64,000 nucleotides of DNA from Trichosphaerium sp. ATCC 40318 (Eukaryota > Protista > Tubulinea): positions 124,001 to 188,000 of the forward strand of contig JALMLS010000411.1 in NCBI GenBank assembly GCA_038496445.1, written 5' to 3'. Shown in pieces: positions 15,775-57,166 of this stretch. The first letter of the stretch is position 1, and each line of letters opens with the position of its first letter. The position numbers were made by a program, and so were the translations under genes. Under the pieces are notes generated by a model that worked only from the letters and a program-made list of their open reading frames with translations, was not told where the DNA came from and ran no database searches.

Positions 15775-17153
15775 ATGGAAAAAGGGGCATCTAACACCAT
15801 AGCTCAAACGTACGTGCAAATTAGTCTATAAACCTAATGTAATCGCTTTATAGTCCGAAAGAAAGCCTTTTAGACCTTCCGGAAGAGATTTTAGCACTTA
15901 TATTACGACAAACGACTAAAGCACGCTTTGCGGCATCACAAACATGTCACCACCTTGCATCTATCGTTCACGATATTATTGGATACAGTAGCGTTCATAT
16001 TTCGACTGCCGAACAAGCAAGAGCAGTTTTAAAACATTCAAGTACTCTACGCCACACAAGAATCATACTGAGCTCATTTGATACCGATGACATTGTCAAA
16101 TTATTATCTGGTGCTCGTTATATTACTCTGTTTAAAGCAAATGTTACAGATGAGGGGATAAAAGCACTTGCCGGAGTTCATACAATTGAACTTTACGATT
16201 GTAGGAAGATAACAGATGAAGGTTTTAAAGCTCTCGCTGGTGTTCATACAATTGATCTAAGAGGCACAGAGATAAGGAATGAAGGCCTCAAAGCACTTGC
16301 TGGTGTTCATAAAATTCAGCTTAACCTTTGTTCAATAACAGATGAAGGGATAAAAGCTCTTGCTGGAGTTCATACAATCAGTCTTAACCTTTGTTCAATA
16401 ACAGATGATGGCATTAAAGCTCTTGCTGGAGTTCATACAATTGATCTTACCTGTTGTATGAAGATTACAGATGAAGGAATAAAAGCTCTTGCTGGTGTTC
16501 ATGACATTAGCCTCTGTAGTACTAACATAACAGATGAAGGTATAAAAGCTTTTGCTGGTATTCATACAATTGCTCTCAGGAGCACATATGCAACGGATGA
16601 AGGGATAAAAGCACTTGCTGGAGTTCATACAATTGATCTTAGTTATTGTAGGACTAACATAACAGATGAAGGTATTAAAGCTCTCGCTGGTGTTCATACA
16701 ATTAATCTTGCCCATTGTAATATTACAGATGAAGGGGTAAAAGCTCTTACTGGTGTTCATAATATTTGTCTCATGGGTTGTAACAAAATTACGGATGAAG
16801 GGATAAAAGCACTTGGTGGAGTTCATACAATTGATCTTAGAAATTGTGAGAACATAACAGATGAAGGTATTAAAGCTCTCGCTGGTGTTCATACAATTGA
16901 TCTAAGAGGCACAAATATAAGAAATGAAGGCCTTAAAGCTCTCGCTGGTGTTCATACAATTAATCTTGCCCATTGTAATATTACAGATGAAGGGATAAAA
17001 GCTCTCGCTGGCGTTCATGAAATTGATCTTAGTTATTGTAAGGAGCTAACAGATGAAGGTATAATAGCTCTTGTTGGCGTTCATAAAATTACCACATTTG
17101 ATGTTAAAGTAAGCACAGAATGTCTTGCAGAAGTACAAAGGAACAGAAACTAA
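15775..17153 (+). CDS. F-box + leucine-rich-repeat protein
   Basis: Short first exon and a GTACGT..TAG intron, then LLDLPEEILALILRQ (F-box) and about 15 tandem 21-23 aa LRRs of type ITDEGIKALAGVHTIxL in one open exon. Confidence 0.88.
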
Positions 17154-23115: not shown

Positions 23116-24986
23116 TTATTGGAGTACTTTTTTGCCATTCTTCTTCACGCATTGTAGTGTTAGTTTTCCATTTTGATCCCATTCTTTGTACTCACCATTA
23201 TCCAAGTTATTTCTAGTCATACATTGTAGTTTTATTTGCCCATTCTCATACCATTCTTTGTACTCTCCTTCATACTTTGAGTTCACAAAGTAGCATTGTG
23301 TACATAAATTCCCGTTTTGGTACCATTCCTTGTACTCTCCTTCTTTCTTACCTCCCTTGAAGAAGTTCTTAACGTAAATTTGACCACACTTATACCACAT
23401 CCTAGCTAAACCTTCGGCTTTTCCATTGACACGAGTCAAACATCGTTTCATTTGTCCATTGGGATACCATTCTTTTTCTTCTCCATGAGGAATACTGTCC
23501 TTTACATAAAACTGTAAATACAACTGTCCATTCCTGTGCCAACGTTTTACTTCGCCTTGTACTTTATCATCCCATTCATAGAAGCGCTTGTGTAATTGTC
23601 CATTGTCATAGAACTCTTCATACTTTCCTGCCGTTTTGCCATTCCTTGCTGTATACTGTACTTGTAGTTTACCATTTTCATACCATTGCCTACTCTCTCC
23701 ATGTTCTACGCCGTGTTTCCAAAATCGTTGAGTTACCAACTGTCCATTACTGTACCAGCAATTGCGTTCTCCTTCTTTTTTGCCATTGTGAATCGTATAA
23801 ACCTGTTTCATTTGTCCATTTTCATACCATTCTTCCACTAGTCCTTCCATGACGTTATCAACAAAGTGTGCACATACCGACAGTTGTTTATTCTTATGCC
23901 ACTCCTTGTGCTTGCCATTCTGCTTTCCGTTCTTGTACATAGCACTTATAATCTTACGCCCATCTTCATAGATGATGGTCTTGCCATCCGTTACCTCAAC
24001 ACAAGATGTAATTTGGCCATCTTCGTTCCACTGTTTTACAGTGCCGTAAGGCTTACCATTGCAACAGAATTTTTCTAATTTTCTTGTTCCATTTTCGTGG
24101 TAGTACGTTTCTTTTAGACATTGTTTGCCATTGATAATTTTAATGTTACCTTCTTTGATCATTTCTTGGTTATACAAGTCATCTGTGCTATCTTCGAAGA
24201 ACAAACAAGATTTAAGGTTTCCATTCTCAAAATATTCTTTCCTAAACCTCGCCACTTTTTTGCATTGACGAAAGTAGTGTATCTTTAGTTTGCCATTTTC
24301 ATACCACTCTTTCACTTCACCTTCTTTTATTCCATCTGTGGCGCTCATATATGCTTTCATATTACCATTTTCATACCACTTTTGGAGTATTCCTTCCACC
24401 TTGTCGTTTTTTAGCATTCCTTGTACTGCTACCTGTCCGTTTTCGTGCCACTCTTGATGCTTTCCTGTCCCCTTTCCATTTTCAAAGAAGCATTGTTCAG
24501 CAATCTGCCCATTCGAGTGCCACTTCTTTCTCTCACCATGAGTTTTGCCTTGTAAATAGAATGATTGATACTGCAGCTGCCCGTTCTCATACCACTGCAA
24601 TGCCTTTCCATTTGTCTTTCCGTATTTATGATAGTAATGCGCCTGAAGTTGTTCGTTTTTATACCATTGTTTTATCTCGCCAACAGGTAGTTGAATCATG
24701 GCCTTTAACTCTCCTGTTGAAAACCACCGCTTCCAGATACCCTTTTTTCTAAAATCATTCGTAAAGTGAGTGTTTTTAGCAGCTGCAGCAGACAGTAGGT
24801 GATATTTTATGTAAACTTCTTTATCGAGCGAGCATATGTAACGTTGAACATCATTTGGTAATGTCAGCAGACCACGTGATACCGAGCGAGCTAAAGAATA
24901 AAAGTTAGCCGCTAAAAATACGAGAAAGGTTATATCACTTGCTACTACGCACCGTCTAGTCTAATTTGCTTTTGTGAGGTTCGCAT
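23116..24986 (-). CDS. F-box-like + MORN-variant repeat protein, copy A
   Basis: ATG at 24986, short exon MRTSQKQIRLD and a GTGCGT..TAG intron, then LLTLPNDVQRYICSL (F-box-like) and >20 repeats of GxxxxWYENGQ in one exon. Confidence 0.85.
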
Positions 24987-50221: not shown

Positions 50222-51244
50222 TTATGACAACATTTTGATTTCTACTACATCGTATAACCATACATAGAATCTCCAGTCAGCTTTTCTCCTTAATCGCGTA
50301 GTAGCAGTTACATTAGATCCATCACTATCTTTGCAAGGTAAAACCAACTTTAAAGTCATTTGTGTCGAATCCAATTCCATTGATACAACATCGCCATCTC
50401 TAAGCTGGATTCTAGCGTCAATCTGTTCCTCTCCATCATAGAATACTAATCCGTGGCCCCAACCAAAGTCAGGTGTTGGTCTGATATAATCTTCTTCGGG
50501 ATTTTTAGGACAATAGCTGATACCAAACATTAGAGGAAGTGCACTTGTTTGAGTTGTTGTCTTTATAATTTTAAACATCCACGTGTTTTTCTCAAATACA
50601 TTAGCACCAAGGCAAATAACACGTCTGTAAACTGAGGAAATACGAGTATTACATTCAGAAATCTTAGCTTGTCCGTGAACATGAACTGAAGAAAACCAAT
50701 CATTAGTTGATGGAATGAGTCCAAGGAACTTTGTGAATGATCTGAACTCTTTGTCTTTAACACCTTGTTCAAATAATGCTTGGGCTGGAGACTCTTGATT
50801 GAGTGTAGCCAAGCGAAGGTACTTGAGAACAATAGCAAAGAATTGATGGTCATAATCGAGGAAGACATTGTCATCTTTGTCTCTCTTTAAGTTACCATCA
50901 TGTCTGCCGCTGAACATACTGTAAAGCATAGAATCAACAACACAGCATAATGTTCGACGTGTTGTTGACATTATCTCTCCACCAACGTTTAATGTGAAAA
51001 TGTCATCTTGTTTTGTATGTGATGCTCTGAAAGTTGCTTTTTCAGCCTCCCATTGTTGTCTTTCTTCTTTTATTTCCTTTCTTTTTTTTTCGCAATAATC
51101 ACGTGTTTCTGACTTGTATTTGTCTATTTGTAGCTTGTCGTGATTTAATTTGCGTCTTCTATCGTCCAGTTCCGCTGCCAAACTCTCGAGTATGTTACTA
51201 TCATTGGCAGACGCATTTAACCGCTTTGAAGGCGGTTGGCTCAT
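50222..51244 (-). CDS. Coiled-coil + KCTD/T1-type BTB domain protein with beta-rich (SPRY-like) C-terminus, intronless
   Basis: TLNVGGEIMSTTRRTL...SMLYSMFSGR...VFLDYD..FF..VLKYLR. C-terminal W.FKI...FGI...GDVVSMELD. Confidence 0.88.
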   Translation of the reverse strand: MSQPPSKRLNASANDSNILESLAAELDDRRRKLNHDKLQIDKYKSETRDYCEKKRKEIKEERQQWEAEKATFRASHTKQDDIFTLNVGGEIMSTTRRTLCCVVDSMLYSMFSGRHDGNLKRDKDDNVFLDYDHQFFAIVLKYLRLATLNQESPAQALFEQGVKDKEFRSFTKFLGLIPSTNDWFSSVHVHGQAKISECNTRISSVYRRVICLGANVFEKNTWMFKIIKTTTQTSALPLMFGISYCPKNPEEDYIRPTPDFGWGHGLVFYDGEEQIDARIQLRDGDVVSMELDSTQMTLKLVLPCKDSDGSNVTATTRLRRKADWRFYVWLYDVVEIKMLS

Positions 51245-51503
51245 TCCTACGACAATTCAATAAGATTGCTTATACAATTAAGTCATCATTGAACAACAAC
51301 CCGTGTCTGTGCTCCCAGACAATATATGCACTGCTTATTGCTTCGTACTTTAACCTTGTAACAGTGTCATAACCGAAATTAGTTTTTTTAGTAGTTGCTA
51401 GCAAAGTTCTAGCCTGATAGAATGCAGCTACATTTTCAGGTTTTAAAGCGCATTGTAAGGACTCAATTAATTGCAACTGCAATACAAATCTTTATTCATT
51501 TTG

Positions 51504-52958
51504 TCACAAACCATGCGGCTTATGGGTGACAACAAACATAAGTAGGATACAGACAAAAGTGAAGAGAACCACGCAAACTACTTGTAAAGGAGTTGGTATT
51601 ACTTTATCATTCTTTTGTATCCGACAAACAATGTATCGAGTTCCATCCCAACAGTCTTGATGAGTAATCCACACCTTGCCATACAGAAAAGTTCGTTCTA
51701 AATGATTTTCTTTAGTACATTCTTCAAAAGGAATAGCACGTGTGTATTCATCGCCTTTTCTAGGACATAATGAATAGTATTTTTGAAAAATCTTAAAGGC
51801 AACCTCCTTGTTACCTAATATGTTGTTCAGTCCTTGATGTCCAAAAAAAGTAATTGTCTGTACCTACTGACCTCTCTAAGACTTCATCATATCCGTCTTC
51901 ATATCGTTTATATATTTGTACTGGAGGAACGTATACTGGTTTCTGAACAAAAGTTCTTGGTACCGAGGATGGAAAACCTGATTTAATAAGCCGTTTAAGT
52001 CTTTTTATATCTTTAGAGTTGTAACGTTTCATGATGTTATTAAAAGGGTCACCTATGTCTAAAACAAGTGGCCTGTATCGCGTTAACTTTGACGTTTCTA
52101 TCTGACATTGTTGTACCTTTGTTGTGCTGTGGTACTATCAATGAAGTGTTGGTAGTTCGGTTCTTTGTTTAAAATGAAAACGAGTTCATCAGGATTAGAC
52201 AGTTCTCTAAGCACATGACGTGCTAGTTGCTTTAGGTTTGTATCATCGTATTTTATTGCAACTCCAATGGAAAGCAATTCAATGAGGTATGACTTTGGAT
52301 AACCAATAATACGTTTCGTCACCCGTTGTGTTTTAATTGTTCTGATAAACTTTCGTGCTACATGCATGTCTTTCAGTATCTCCCTAACAAACTGAATCCG
52401 TTTTACTGATAGATGTGAAGAGTAGAAAGAGCGTCTTCTTTTCGATTTGTACTGAATTGCCTTCCAAACTTTAACCCAGTGGTAACCGCGATAGGCAATA
52501 CCTGTTATTATTAAAACAAGAGCCTTTTTTCCGTAGTTATCACGTGCCCGGAAGCGCCGCAGTGGGTAATAAATCTATTCTAACGTTTTCCCCGTTGTAC
52601 TTTCCTTCAAGTATTACAGAGTACGGTGTTACTGCCGTAACTTCAACACTAACCCCTGGAATACGTGATGATACGTTGTATATCTTCATAACGTGTTTAT
52701 TTATTTCGTCCTCTGAGAGATTTTCAAAGGGAAATTGATGAAAGTACCTGGTAGGTGTTTAATAAAGAACAACCAAACCTGGTTTAGGTTCGTACAATAC
52801 AAAATCATAATCTGATGTGGGTATATCTGTTTTCTTGCCTCTTGAGCCCGCCTTTGGTGGATTTAATGACTACCAGACCTGTTGATTACTCTTACCTTGA
52901 TTACAGTTGCTTTAAGCTCTTTCGCCAAGTAGAATACTACAGATTGTACCAACGACAT
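51504..52958 (-). CDS. 2'-5' oligoadenylate synthetase (OAS)/CD-NTase-like nucleotidyltransferase with C-terminal TM helix
   Basis: Spliced: VIKAGSRGKKTDIPTSDYDFVLY (GS...DxD), VRIDLLPT (third Asp), FIRTIK, PKSYLIELL, RPLVLDIGDPFNNI. Ends VVCVVLFTFVCILLMFVV-THKPHGL*. Additional 5' exons are possible. Confidence 0.8.
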
Positions 52959-55453
52959 GTCTGCGTCTTAACACCTCGAGTTTAAAAATATCTTGCGAAG
53001 AAATACTAAGCAAAACTTGTACACCAAAGGGTCAATCCATTGCATAGGCTTGCGATGAGCTAACATAGCTCTATCCACAAATTTGAACAATCTACCATTA
53101 ATAAACGGTGTTCCCTACATGATTTAGGAGGATAGTTTTGAGCCTCATCGAGCCAATATCAACACTAAAACAATAGGCAATGTGGTCAACAAATTTCACT
53201 TTGCAACTTGCAATCTAAGAAAGTGTGATGAGCTCAAGTTCAGTGGTTTAATACCAGGCGAAATGACTGGCCCACGTGAATTTGCCAAAAACTTAGTCAA
53301 CTCCGATAAACATGTATTCTAAGAATAGCAAAGGATAACTGTGTAACACAGGACATGTGCTACCGCTAGAGAATTGCGTTTTTAGTGGAGTAGAGCACTC
53401 ATAAGGTGTTTATGCATGACTAGGGCCTACAGCAGATAGGGTGTTTAAGAAATGTGCACAACACTTAGCCAATATGTTACTTAAGTGCAAAAATTCAAAA
53501 CCAACGAGTTTGTTGACACGTTGGAACAATTCTTGGCACTACTTATGCAAACCTCACAAAAGCAAATTAAACTAGCCGGTGCGTAGCAGCAAGTGATATA
53601 ACTTTCTCGTATTTTAGCGGCTAACTTTTATTCTTTAGCTCGCTCGGTATCACGTGGTCTGCTGACATTACCAAACGATATTCAACTTTACATTTGCTCG
53701 CTTGATAAAGAAGTTTACATAAAATATCACCTACTGTCTGCTGCAGCTGCTAAAAACACTCACTTTACGAATGATTTTAGAAAAAAGGGTACCTGGAAGC
53801 AGTGGTATTCAACAGGAGAGTTAAAGGCCATGATTCAACTACCTGTTGGCGAGGCAAAACATTGGTATAAAAACGGACAACTTCAGGCGCATTACTACCA
53901 TAAATACGGAAAGACAAATGGAAAGGCATTGCAGTGGTATGAGAACGGGCAGCTGCAGTATCAATCGTTCTATTTACAAGGCAAAACTCATGGTGAGAGA
54001 AAGAAGTGGCACTCGAATGGGCAGATTGCTGAACAATGCTTCTTTGAAAATGGAAAGGGGACAGGAAAGCATCAAGAGTGGCACGAAAACGGACAGGTAG
54101 CAGTACAAGGAATGCTAAAAAACGACAAGTATGAAGGAATACTCCAAAAGTGGTATGAAAATGGTAATATGAAAGCATATACAAGCGTTAGAGATGGAAT
54201 AAAAGAAGGTGAAGTGAAAGAGTGGTATGAAAATGGCAAACTAAAGATACACTACTTTCGTCAATGCAAAAAAGTGGCGAGGTTTAGGAAAGAATATTTT
54301 GAGAATGGAAACCTTAAATCTTGTTTGTTCTTCGAAGATAGCACAGATGACTTGTATAACCAAGAAATGATCAAAGAAGGTAACATTAAAACTATCGATG
54401 GCAAACAATGTCTAAAAGAAACGCACTACCACGAAAATGGAACAAGAAAATTAGAAAAATTCTGTTGCAATGGTAAGCCTTACGGCACTGCAAAACAGTG
54501 GAATGAAGATGGCCAAATTACAGCTTGTGTTGAGGTAAAGAATGGCATACTGTACGGTAAGAGTGTCATGTACAAAGGTGGGAATAAGATAAAAAGTGCT
54601 ATGTTCAAGAACGGAAAGAAGAATGGTAAATACAAGGAGTGGCATGAAAATACTGAACTTTCGTTGCGTCTATGTTATATTGATGATGTGGTGGAAGGAC
54701 TAGTGGAAGAATGGTATGAAAATGGACAAATGAAACAGATTTATACGATTCACAATGGCAAAAAAGAAGGAGAACGCAAATGCTGGTACAGTAATGGACA
54801 GTTGGAAACTCAACGATTTTGGAAACACGGCTTAGAACATGGAGAGAGTAGGCAATGGTATGAAAATGGTAAATTACAAGTACGGTGTGTAGCAAGGAAT
54901 GGTAAAACGGCAGGAAAGTATGAAGAGTTCTACGACAATGGACAATTACACAAGCGCTTCTATGACTGGGATGATAAAGTACAAGGCGAAGTAAAACGTT
55001 GGCACAGGAATGGACAGTTGTATTTACAGTTTTATGTAAAGGACAGTATTCTTCATGGAGAAGAAAAAGAATGGTATCCCAATGGACAAATGAAGCGATG
55101 TTTGACTCATGTCAATGGAAAAGCTGAAGGTTTAGCTAGGATGTGGTATAAATGTGGTCAAATTCGTTGTGAGCACTCTTCAAAGAGAGGTAAGAAAGAA
55201 GGAGAGTACAAGGAATGGTACCAAAACGGGAATTTATGTACACAATGCTACTTTGTGAACTCGAAGTATGAAGGAGAGTACAAAGAATGGTATGAGAATG
55301 GGCAAATGAAACTACAATGTATGACTAGAAATAACTTGGATAATGGTGAGTACAAAGAATGGGATCAAAATGGGAAACTAAAGCTACAATGTGTGAAGAA
55401 GAATGGCAAAAAAGTACTCCAATAAATAAATAATAAAGAAGCAATTCGTCGAT
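52932..55453 (+). repeat. Copy B of the ~2.5-kb inverted segmental duplication (partner 23087-25675)
   Basis: Direct comparison with copy A; homology ends at ...GCAATTCGTCGAT on the 3' side. Confidence 0.92.
53545..55425 (+). CDS. F-box-like + MORN-variant repeat protein, copy B
   Basis: ATG at 53545, exon MQTSQKQIKLA and a GTGCGT..TAG intron, then LLTLPNDIQLYICSL and a WYENGQ repeat array. Confidence 0.85.
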
Positions 55454-55858: not shown

Positions 55859-56170
55859 ACACTGCCCTACAAAGCTTGGTCAATATAGCACCCTCATAGC
55901 ATAGTTATAATTTGCTCAATGTATGGTTTTATCTTATGTTGTCATGTATACACGAGGTATTGCAAGAAACTTAACTGCAGTTAAGGCAATGTTAGCACTG
56001 TTACAAAGCAGAGCTATACTCACCTATGTTATTACTTACGCACACCAACTCCACTTGCTTCAACAGAAGCGAATCAAGAAAGAAAGTATTGTATCAACCG
56101 ATGACACGGCAACGAACATGATTATTCTTTCAAAGTCAAGCGCAATAAAGCCGTGATTACTTGTAACGTA

Positions 56171-57166
56171 ATGGCTGGTTGTTGTAGTACGTTTTTTGGG
56201 GCATTAGCGCTCGCGTTAGTTGGTAGTTATCTTTATTTCTTAAATATTTACCTAAACGATGTTCCTACGCCCGTAAACACTGATGACATCATCGCTGATG
56301 GTGGAAAATTCCTTAAACTTAAAAATGGCCACGTCCTCGAGTATTTCGAGTTTGGAGACCACGAATCAACTGATACGGTGCTATTCATACACGGATACGG
56401 CCAAACAGGCCGATACATAAAAACACACTCAGAAACGTTCAAAAAAGCAAAACTTCGAGTCATCTCTCCGACTTATCCTGGTTCTGGCTTATCTGAGTTC
56501 TTTCCTTACGAATTCACAGAGTTCCCTAGTATAATGGCTGAACTAATGGATCATGTTGGTATAGAATCATTCTACTGTATGGGTATATCTAATGGAGGAC
56601 CACATGTTATATCTGTTTCTTCTATTCTTGGAAAACGTGTCAAGGATGTTGTTCTGGTTGTACCTCTCTCTGAGACTACAGAGGATAATGATCCTTTTGA
56701 GAATGTACCTGTAGCTTTGAAGGTGTTCATGAAGATACTTATGCTGCCAACATTAAGCGAGATGATGAATTATTATGCAACAGGACCTTCTATAAGAAAA
56801 GATCCACATCATCATTTTTCTGTTATGCTTCCTGAAGAATGGACTGAGTTTCTACAAGTTTGTAGTAAAGAAGTTGTTGATAATTTCGCTTATGATCATT
56901 CAAGAGGTGTTAAGAGAACTGTTGAGAGTTTAGTACATTTGTTCAGGATCAATAATTTGCCTTGGCATTTAGATTATAAAAAAGTAAGTCAAGGAAGAAA
57001 TGTCTATATTTATTCAGGTATTCGAGACACTTTATGCCCTCCTTCTGGTCAAACATACTTGTCAAAGATTATACCAAATAGTCAACTTATTAGAAAGAAT
57101 AGTACTCACACTACAATAATGATGAGTCATCTTCCAGAAATGTTAGAAAAACTAACACAAAAATAA
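56171..57166 (+). CDS. Alpha/beta-hydrolase with N-terminal membrane anchor, intronless
   Basis: FIHGYG oxyanion loop, PGSGLS, nucleophile elbow GISNGG, acid GIRDTLC, His in NSTHTT. Confidence 0.92.
   Translation: MAGCCSTFFGALALALVGSYLYFLNIYLNDVPTPVNTDDIIADGGKFLKLKNGHVLEYFEFGDHESTDTVLFIHGYGQTGRYIKTHSETFKKAKLRVISPTYPGSGLSEFFPYEFTEFPSIMAELMDHVGIESFYCMGISNGGPHVISVSSILGKRVKDVVLVVPLSETTEDNDPFENVPVALKVFMKILMLPTLSEMMNYYATGPSIRKDPHHHFSVMLPEEWTEFLQVCSKEVVDNFAYDHSRGVKRTVESLVHLFRINNLPWHLDYKKVSQGRNVYIYSGIRDTLCPPSGQTYLSKIIPNSQLIRKNSTHTTIMMSHLPEMLEKLTQK

Follow-up and report, generated by a model that had tools for sequence, protein, structure and literature searches.

We analyzed a stretch of 64,000 nucleotides from the protist Trichosphaerium sp. 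ATCC 40318 (contig JALMLS010000411.1, positions 124,001 to 188,000; in the following called the window). At positions 52958-51504, on the minus strand, lies a gene of six exons and five introns that probably encodes a tail-anchored enzyme of 407 amino acids from the oligoadenylate synthetase (OAS) branch of the cGAS/DncV-like nucleotidyltransferase (CD-NTase) superfamily. When positions 52990-51480 were read as the reverse complement and the splice combinations tested, a coding sequence of 1224 nt resulted, with no internal stop codon or frameshift across the five introns. The sequence starts with an ATG at 52958-52956, has a TAA in frame 12 nt further upstream, and ends with a stop codon at 51504-51506. 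The gene is intact, spliced and transcribed. A first-pass annotation of the window had placed the start, the stop and six in-frame exons, including the catalytic ones, exactly here, in agreement with the reading frame, the joints found in transcripts and the alignment to a protein relative, P0001. The G + C content of the window is 35-41% throughout.

Table 1 Exons and introns of the OAS-like gene and further genes in the window. The relative P0001 and the transcript runs X1, X2 and X3 are introduced in the text.
Feature	Position	Strand	Content	Support
Exon 1	52896..52958	-	aa 1-21, first helix of the nucleotidyltransferase core	Residue 1 aligns with P0001 residue 1; joint 52850/52895 in X2 and X3 contigs
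Intron 1	52852..52895	-	44 nt, GT-AG	Joints in X2 and X3 contigs
Exon 2	52796..52851	-	aa 22-40, with G23-S24, K27 and the metal-binding pair D35-x-D37	78% identity to P0001 residues 27-44; aligned to OAS1 GGSSGK...SDAD through P0001
Intron 2	52748..52795	-	48 nt, GT-AG, in-frame TAA inside	Joint 52743/52792 with cut +4 in X2 and X3
Exon 3	52548..52747	-	aa 40-106, core beta-sheet, third catalytic Asp D98 in RIDLLP	Aligned to OAS1 FDVLP (pig D147) through P0001
Intron 3	52502..52547	-	46 nt, GC-AG	X2 joint; X3 joint with 16 substituted letters; required by the frame
Exon 4	52117..52501	-	aa 107-235, OAS1_C-type helical lobe, with R146, K150, K163 and S177-Y178	P0001 match; X1 contigs identical at 52116-52359
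Intron 4	52073..52116	-	44 nt, GT-AG	Joint in X1 (identical contig), X2 and X3
Exon 5	51864..52072	-	aa 235-305, RPLVLDIGDPFNN motif, last core helix, Pro-rich linker	X1 contig identical at 51926-52071
Intron 5	51815..51863	-	49 nt, GT-AG	Joint 51811/51861 with cut +3 in X2 and X3
Exon 6	51504..51814	-	aa 305-407 and stop, Cys-containing region, transmembrane helix (~51522-51584), tail HKPHGL	X1 contig 51618-51774 with 1 mismatch; X2 contig to 51503
MORN_2-repeat gene	53485-55425 (open reading frame 53830-55425)	+	16 repeats, E 2.8e-64, head-to-head with the OAS-like gene	Pfam
Second MORN_2-repeat open reading frame	23116-24699	-	527 aa, E 2.2e-59, paralogue of the 53830 gene	No OAS-like gene beside it (tblastn)
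BTB_2 (T1-type BTB/POZ) open reading frame	50222-51244	-	340 aa, E 1.9e-10, 260 nt downstream of the OAS-like stop	Covered by X3 contigs
Alpha/beta hydrolase open reading frame (Abhydrolase_1)	56153-57166	+	E 2.4e-11	Pfam
LRR_6-rich open reading frame	16458-17153	+	E 3.3e-37	Pfam

With intron 2 placed at 52795-52748, the mature protein reads DYDFVL followed directly by YFHQ; contrary to the most obvious reading, YEPKPG belongs to the intron. Several other splice variants were tried and discarded. An intron 2 of 31 nt (CCAG/GTTTGG...CCAG) breaks the frame, whereas the 48-nt version stays in frame and fits the joints. A GT-AG intron 3 of 106 nt disagrees with the X2 contig, which skips 46 nt, and the 20 residues that would be lost with it align with P0001; the aligner put the same 46-nt skip at 52504-52549. 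In place of an intron 5 of 30 or 31 nt, the contigs show 49 nt. Read-through of stops by a ciliate genetic code was dropped, since canonical introns account for every stop. The alignment to P0001 is gap-free at the first four exon junctions, which independently supports these junctions, including that of the 46-nt intron 3. Because this alignment begins at residue 1, the N-terminus of the gene model is complete.

Contigs of the gene were found in three public runs, of which X2 and X3 derive from one sample. As these contigs lack the introns, they stem from spliced RNA. Run X1 gave three contigs, at 51618-51774, 51926-52211 and 52195-52359, with 1, 0 and 0 mismatches to the window, respectively. 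Their combined coverage is 564 nt within exons 4-6. The middle one jumps from 52071 to 52116, corresponding to intron 4. Runs X2 and X3 each gave a single contig of 1.0-1.1 kb, both with the joints of introns 1, 2, 4 and 5. All five introns are thereby seen as joints in public contigs, introns 1, 2, 3 and 5 solely in X2 and X3. The confirmation of exons by transcripts, which the first-pass annotation had called for, was hence obtained for intron 4 on identical contigs and for the other four introns only on contigs 93-97% alike.

The X2 and X3 contigs, which fall within 51503-53143, are 93-97% alike to the gene, yet match the neighboring MORN gene at 99.7-100% in the same runs. They are probably transcripts of close paralogues, or come from another strain. 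Because of this divergence over the gene, X1 is the sole witness to expression of the exact copy. Indels in the X2 contig all keep the frame (a 3-nt deletion at 51576 and a 12-nt insertion at 51960), and those in the X3 contig break it (22 nt at 52384, 2 nt at 52653 and 11 nt at 51960). The presence of two diverged, expressed versions in one sample suggests a recent duplication with one copy decaying. When the gene model was searched by tblastn against the 64-kb window, no second copy was detected.

To assign the protein to a family, we relied on P0001, a complete open reading frame of 443 amino acids from a marine protist transcriptome (MMETSP). Searching exon 4 (127 aa) by phmmer against 1.84 billion representative proteins returned P0001 as the sole relative, at an E-value of 2.1e-14. 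The spliced model matches it at E 1e-53 with 37% identity, colinear over aa 1-265 (MAFFT misplaces short exon pieces against P0001). In Pfam, P0001 scores 28.7 bits for OAS1_C against a gathering score of 19.9, and matches to MTPAP-like_central (17 bits, cut-off 27), NTP_transf_2 (13 bits, cut-off 21) and Polbeta stay below threshold. Among solved structures in PDB, its only matches below 1e-3 are OAS1 from pig and human (1px5, 4rwn, 4ig8, 4rwo), aligned over residues 13-255 to 46-308. In a profile search with window exons 2 and 4 included, OAS1 was again the only match, at E 1.4e-4.

Over its full core P0001 also matches models of bacterial cyclases from the cyclic oligonucleotide-based antiphage signaling system (CBASS). 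These are the PADLOC oligonucleotide cyclase PDLC00808 (E 8.6e-11) and the NCBIfam model NF041116 (CBASS_cyclase_a; E 1.7e-12). The two models score 47 and 40 bits, and the 47 bits of the NCBIfam model lie far under its equivalog cut-off of 200. Protein-language features of exon 4 are nearest to the SMODS, OAS1_C, DncV_C and CD_NTase_C clusters, which we treat as a lead only. Profiles of housekeeping nucleotidyltransferases, namely poly(A) polymerase, terminal uridylyltransferase (TUTase), CCA-adding enzyme and Nrap, gave nothing above threshold for P0001, and none of these enzymes was among the PDB matches. The first-pass annotation would have given way to best hits of this kind; the best matches of P0001 are instead OAS1 and CBASS cyclases.

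Culbertson & Levin 2023 (PMC10732462) assign proteins with OAS1_C (PF10421) to the OAS superfamily, those with Mab-21 to the cGLRs and those with SMODS to the eSMODS. No match to Mab-21 (PF03281) was detected in P0001 or in the window exons at E-values up to 10, which speaks against the cGLR/Mab21 group. SMODS (PF18144) likewise gave no HMMER match in P0001, at E-values up to 10, or in the window exons, and appeared as feature proximity of exon 4 only, arguing against the eSMODS. By this rule, applied through P0001, the window protein probably belongs to the OAS superfamily; it shares 37% identity with P0001 over the OAS1_C domain, and window exon 4 alone gave no match to OAS1_C. The search for further relatives was negative: a profile of the C-lobe alone found nothing in PDB, and word-indexed searches with P0001, whole or as residues 1-290, returned P0001 itself only at E-values up to 10. 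Scans for related loci and degenerate motifs in metagenome and viral contigs made no find, and tblastn of the P0001 core had no match among plasmids.

The four motifs quoted in the first-pass annotation are all present in the spliced protein, namely AGSRGKKTDIPTSDYDFV (aa 22-39), RIDLLP (aa 96-101), PKSYLIELL (aa 175-183) and RPLVLDIGDPFNN (aa 235-247). The CD-NTase signature of a G-[GS] loop followed, 9-13 residues later on the next strand, by [DE]-h-[DE]-h is found as G23-S24 and D35-Y-D37-F, aligning with GGSSGK...SDADL of OAS1 through P0001. The third acid is D98, which aligns with the Asp of FDVLP in OAS1 (pig D147) through VKIDLLP of P0001. According to the same P0001 alignments, R146 and K150 correspond to R195 and K199 on the dsRNA (double-stranded RNA)-binding helix of OAS1, K163 to K213 and Y178 to Y230, and S177 replaces Q229. 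D240 and D243 are kept in the LD..DP motif. With 45 Lys and Arg versus 25 Asp and Glu, the core has a strongly basic character. These residues favor a presumably active, nucleic acid-binding enzyme, whose product is not readable from the sequence.

Behind the core follow 115 residues (aa 266-380) with Cys at positions 321, 337, 359 and 368. Residues 381-401 form the only strongly hydrophobic segment of the protein, 21 residues long with a mean Kyte-Doolittle value of 3.1, and a tail of six residues (HKPHGL) concludes the chain. AlphaFold, run on exon 6 without an alignment, placed a helix at residues 75-96 of this piece (aa 380-401) with pLDDT (predicted local distance difference test) values of 79-96, the remainder being below 55. 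There is neither a signal peptide nor any other membrane span, and P0001, to whose N-terminus that of the window protein aligns, is not hydrophobic there. A single helix within about 30 residues of the C-terminus, here six residues from the end, in the absence of a signal peptide, is the arrangement of a tail-anchored protein. In this topology the catalytic domain would lie on the cytosolic side. High hydrophobicity of the helix in tail-anchored proteins usually goes along with targeting to the endoplasmic reticulum (ER). The first-pass annotation had described both an extra Cys-containing region and a hydrophobic C-terminal helix; their presence holds, but the helix has 21 instead of 18 residues and the region 115 instead of ~100. 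Our sequence analysis also agrees with its wider assignment to the OAS and cGAS/DncV-like nucleotidyltransferases; the catalytic residues are intact, and the C-terminal anchor would span the membrane once.

No relatives of aa 306-407 were found in an atlas feature search or in a word-indexed search with exon 6. We noticed a sub-threshold Pfam match to Caveolin at 51507-51812 on the minus strand (aa 333-401; E 0.0031, 17.9 bits versus a cut-off of 25), which extends over the juxtamembrane part and the transmembrane helix and may be compositional. The corresponding part of P0001 (residues 273-443, ~170 aa) has no hydrophobic helix and no similarity to the C-terminus of the window protein, and yielded no Pfam match and no usable atlas match. 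As the two C-terminal regions are dissimilar, the same core appears joined to different C-terminal modules.

Looking at the surroundings, the OAS-like gene stands head-to-head with a MORN_2-repeat gene (Table 1). An upstream exon of the latter and a 60-nt GT-AG intron (53578-53637) are seen in an X2 contig, and ahead of its repeats lies an F-box-like LPxxI motif, LLTLPNDIQLYI. In the three runs we found no contig bridging the OAS-like gene and its neighbors, and there is no evidence that the neighbors form a functional island. A scan for bacterial promoters and terminators stayed at chance level and is irrelevant for a eukaryote.

Taken together, we consider a tail-anchored OAS-branch enzyme the probable product of this gene. 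Such a protein would enter an endomembrane post-translationally and expose its catalytic domain to the cytosol; the hydrophobicity of its helix makes the ER the most likely destination. It might be activated by nucleic acid, most plausibly dsRNA, bound on the helix that keeps the basic residues at the R195 and K199 positions of OAS1. It could then polymerize nucleoside triphosphates into a short 2'-5'-linked or cyclic oligonucleotide serving as signal to a receptor. The anchor would put sensing at membranes, where many viruses replicate, comparable to human OAS1 p46 and mouse Oas1b. The 115-aa juxtamembrane region may be lineage-specific, and the gene may be one of several recently duplicated copies in the genome.

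Several observations weigh against this interpretation. The link of the window protein to OAS is a transitive one, drawn through a single bridging sequence, P0001; searched singly, the window exons gave no significant match in Pfam, PADLOC, NCBIfam or PDB. An AlphaFold run on the P0001 core with a three-row alignment reached a pLDDT of 41.9 and gave no confident model. The first ~45 residues of OAS1, which contribute to dsRNA binding, are absent from the window protein. Contigs identical to this copy confirm intron 4 only, and those of X2 and X3 differ by 3-7%, one of them being frameshifted. In a small, selected sample, seven of the eleven listed substitutions relative to the X2 and X3 contigs change the amino acid, which hints at relaxed constraint or diversifying evolution among the copies. 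Finally, no effector gene is evident in the 64-kb window.

Among the alternatives, a membrane-bound pseudo-enzyme or adaptor that uses the OAS fold as a binding scaffold and synthesizes no messenger, in the manner of Oas1b, OASL or the mitochondrial MiD49/51, appears unlikely to us. Non-catalytic, anchored proteins of the OAS or Mab21 fold do exist (Oas1b: PMC13372824), and the serine in place of OAS1 Q229, the missing N-terminal dsRNA-contacting segment and the high share of amino acid-changing differences from the close copies would suit such a role. However, at only 37% identity, the window protein and P0001 both retain all three catalytic acids along with the G-S loop, K27 and K163, as one would expect if the enzyme is active. 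An active enzyme could also belong to the bacterial CBASS type; in place of linear 2'-5' oligoadenylate, its product would be a cyclic dinucleotide or trinucleotide, read by a receptor resembling STING or SAVED. The CBASS cyclase models do score higher for P0001 than OAS1_C (47 and 40 versus 29 bits), although scores cannot be compared between models of full and half length and the NCBIfam value falls well short of its cut-off. The top feature neighbors of exon 4 are bacterial SMODS clusters, and in the phylogeny contained in PMC10732462 the OAS superfamily nests in bacterial clade C, maker of cyclic tri-AMP. HMMER, in contrast, gave no match to the SMODS, DncV-like or CD_NTase_C Pfam models, whereas OAS1_C was above threshold. 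The sequence itself does not tell the product, and we regard this alternative as quite unlikely.

It seems very unlikely that the gene is a decaying, non-functional member of a family duplicated recently, with a transcript that gives no working protein. The idea draws on the 22-, 11- and 2-nt indels of the X3 contig, itself 93-97% alike, and on the non-GT donor of intron 3. But GC-AG is the commonest minor intron class, the X2 version carries in-frame indels only (3 and 12 nt), and the copy in the window has 407 codons free of stops and frameshifts over five introns, conserved catalytic residues, and identical contigs that are spliced. Even less would we expect a housekeeping RNA-modifying enzyme, of the poly(A), terminal uridylyl, CCA-adding or Nrap-like kind, that is membrane-bound by chance; this we consider extremely improbable. 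The sub-threshold matches of P0001 to MTPAP-like_central, Polbeta and NTP_transf_2 reflect the shared Pol-beta fold and never reach threshold, while the helical lobe matches OAS1_C and OAS1 provides the only matches among solved structures. Unlike conserved housekeeping enzymes, the window protein has a single detectable relative among 1.84 billion representatives.

The reading of the gene as a tail-anchored OAS-branch enzyme can be extended to a functional sensor within an innate-immune pathway of the amoeba. The OAS-like synthase family would have diversified by swapping C-terminal modules; the window protein would have received an anchor and a novel Cys domain, P0001 an unrelated domain of 170 aa. 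Its members would duplicate and decay fast, stand head-to-head with fast-evolving F-box/MORN genes, and send a nucleotide messenger to a receptor. We put this forward tentatively and think it rather doubtful. If true, it would be a protist equivalent of OAS-RNase L or cGAS-STING that operates at membranes. To our knowledge, RNase L is not known in this lineage.

Compared with animal OAS1 (1px5, 4ig8, 4rwn), the window protein shares the order of motifs: the G-S loop, DxD, the Asp of hDhLP, the lysine of IRxxK, P-x-x-Y-x-L-E-L-L and RPhhLD..DP. The basic residues at the R195 and K199 positions of the dsRNA-binding helix are also kept. It differs in an identity of ~20-25% at best, measured through P0001 only, in the missing first ~45 residues, and in the added 115-aa Cys region and transmembrane helix. 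Human OAS1 p46 is prenylated (PMC8357416). Mouse Oas1b has a C-terminal transmembrane domain leading to the ER and makes no 2-5A, and OAS2 depends on membrane association (PMC13372824, for Oas1b citing Courtney 2012). Like these three proteins, the window protein would have its OAS core held on endomembranes by its end. As a new idea the membrane anchor is therefore overstated, since OAS proteins attached to membranes are already on record (PMC8357416; Oas1b in PMC13372824). The origin here appears independent, however, with an anchor and a juxtamembrane region that lack detectable similarity to anything, and Oas1b is catalytically inactive whereas the catalytic residues of the window protein are intact.

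The first-pass annotation also went too far with an "undescribed protist" pathway, since OAS-superfamily proteins have been listed from 8 of 12 eukaryotic supergroups, amoebozoans among them, and are inferred to be ancient (PMC10732462). Its supplement lists amoebozoan OAS1_C entries from Paramoeba atlantica, Vannella robusta and Filamoeba sp. with scores like those of P0001. In its S25 file, two OAS1_C proteins of Vannella robusta show a weak, high-bias match to PspB at residues 313-346, near their C-termini, which may reflect a hydrophobic C-terminal helix like that of the window protein. P0001 resembles the protist OAS-superfamily CD-NTases presented in that source in having OAS1_C as its top Pfam domain and no SMODS or Mab-21. 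The clade of the window protein differs from them by its isolation, with one relative at an E-value below 1e-3. Over the whole core, the likeness extends to bacterial CBASS oligonucleotide cyclases (NF041116, PDLC00808) matched by P0001, consistent with the nesting of OAS in bacterial clade C mentioned above (phylogeny in PMC10732462). In contrast to CBASS, the gene is eukaryotic, carries five spliceosomal introns and has no adjoining HORMA/TRIP13, E1/E2 or effector gene. MiD49 and MiD51 likewise present a CD-NTase fold on an organelle membrane through one helix, but their anchor is N-terminal, they belong to the cGLR/Mab21 branch and they lack catalysis, and the window protein has no Mab-21 match.

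A literature search on tail-anchored oligoadenylate synthetases returned no description of such a protist protein. No other CD-NTases are as common among eukaryotes as the OAS-like proteins, yet we know of no protist OAS-like protein with a known product, activator or effector. What is new is an OAS-like clade that is divergent and isolated in sequence and has an anchor and a juxtamembrane module of its own; it extends the known family and is not a new class. An intact, expressed and clonable copy with all catalytic residues and a built-in anchor is a good candidate for testing which messenger an early-branching OAS makes, and whether the membrane siting of OAS-type sensors, as in OAS1 p46 and Oas1b, arose independently outside animals.

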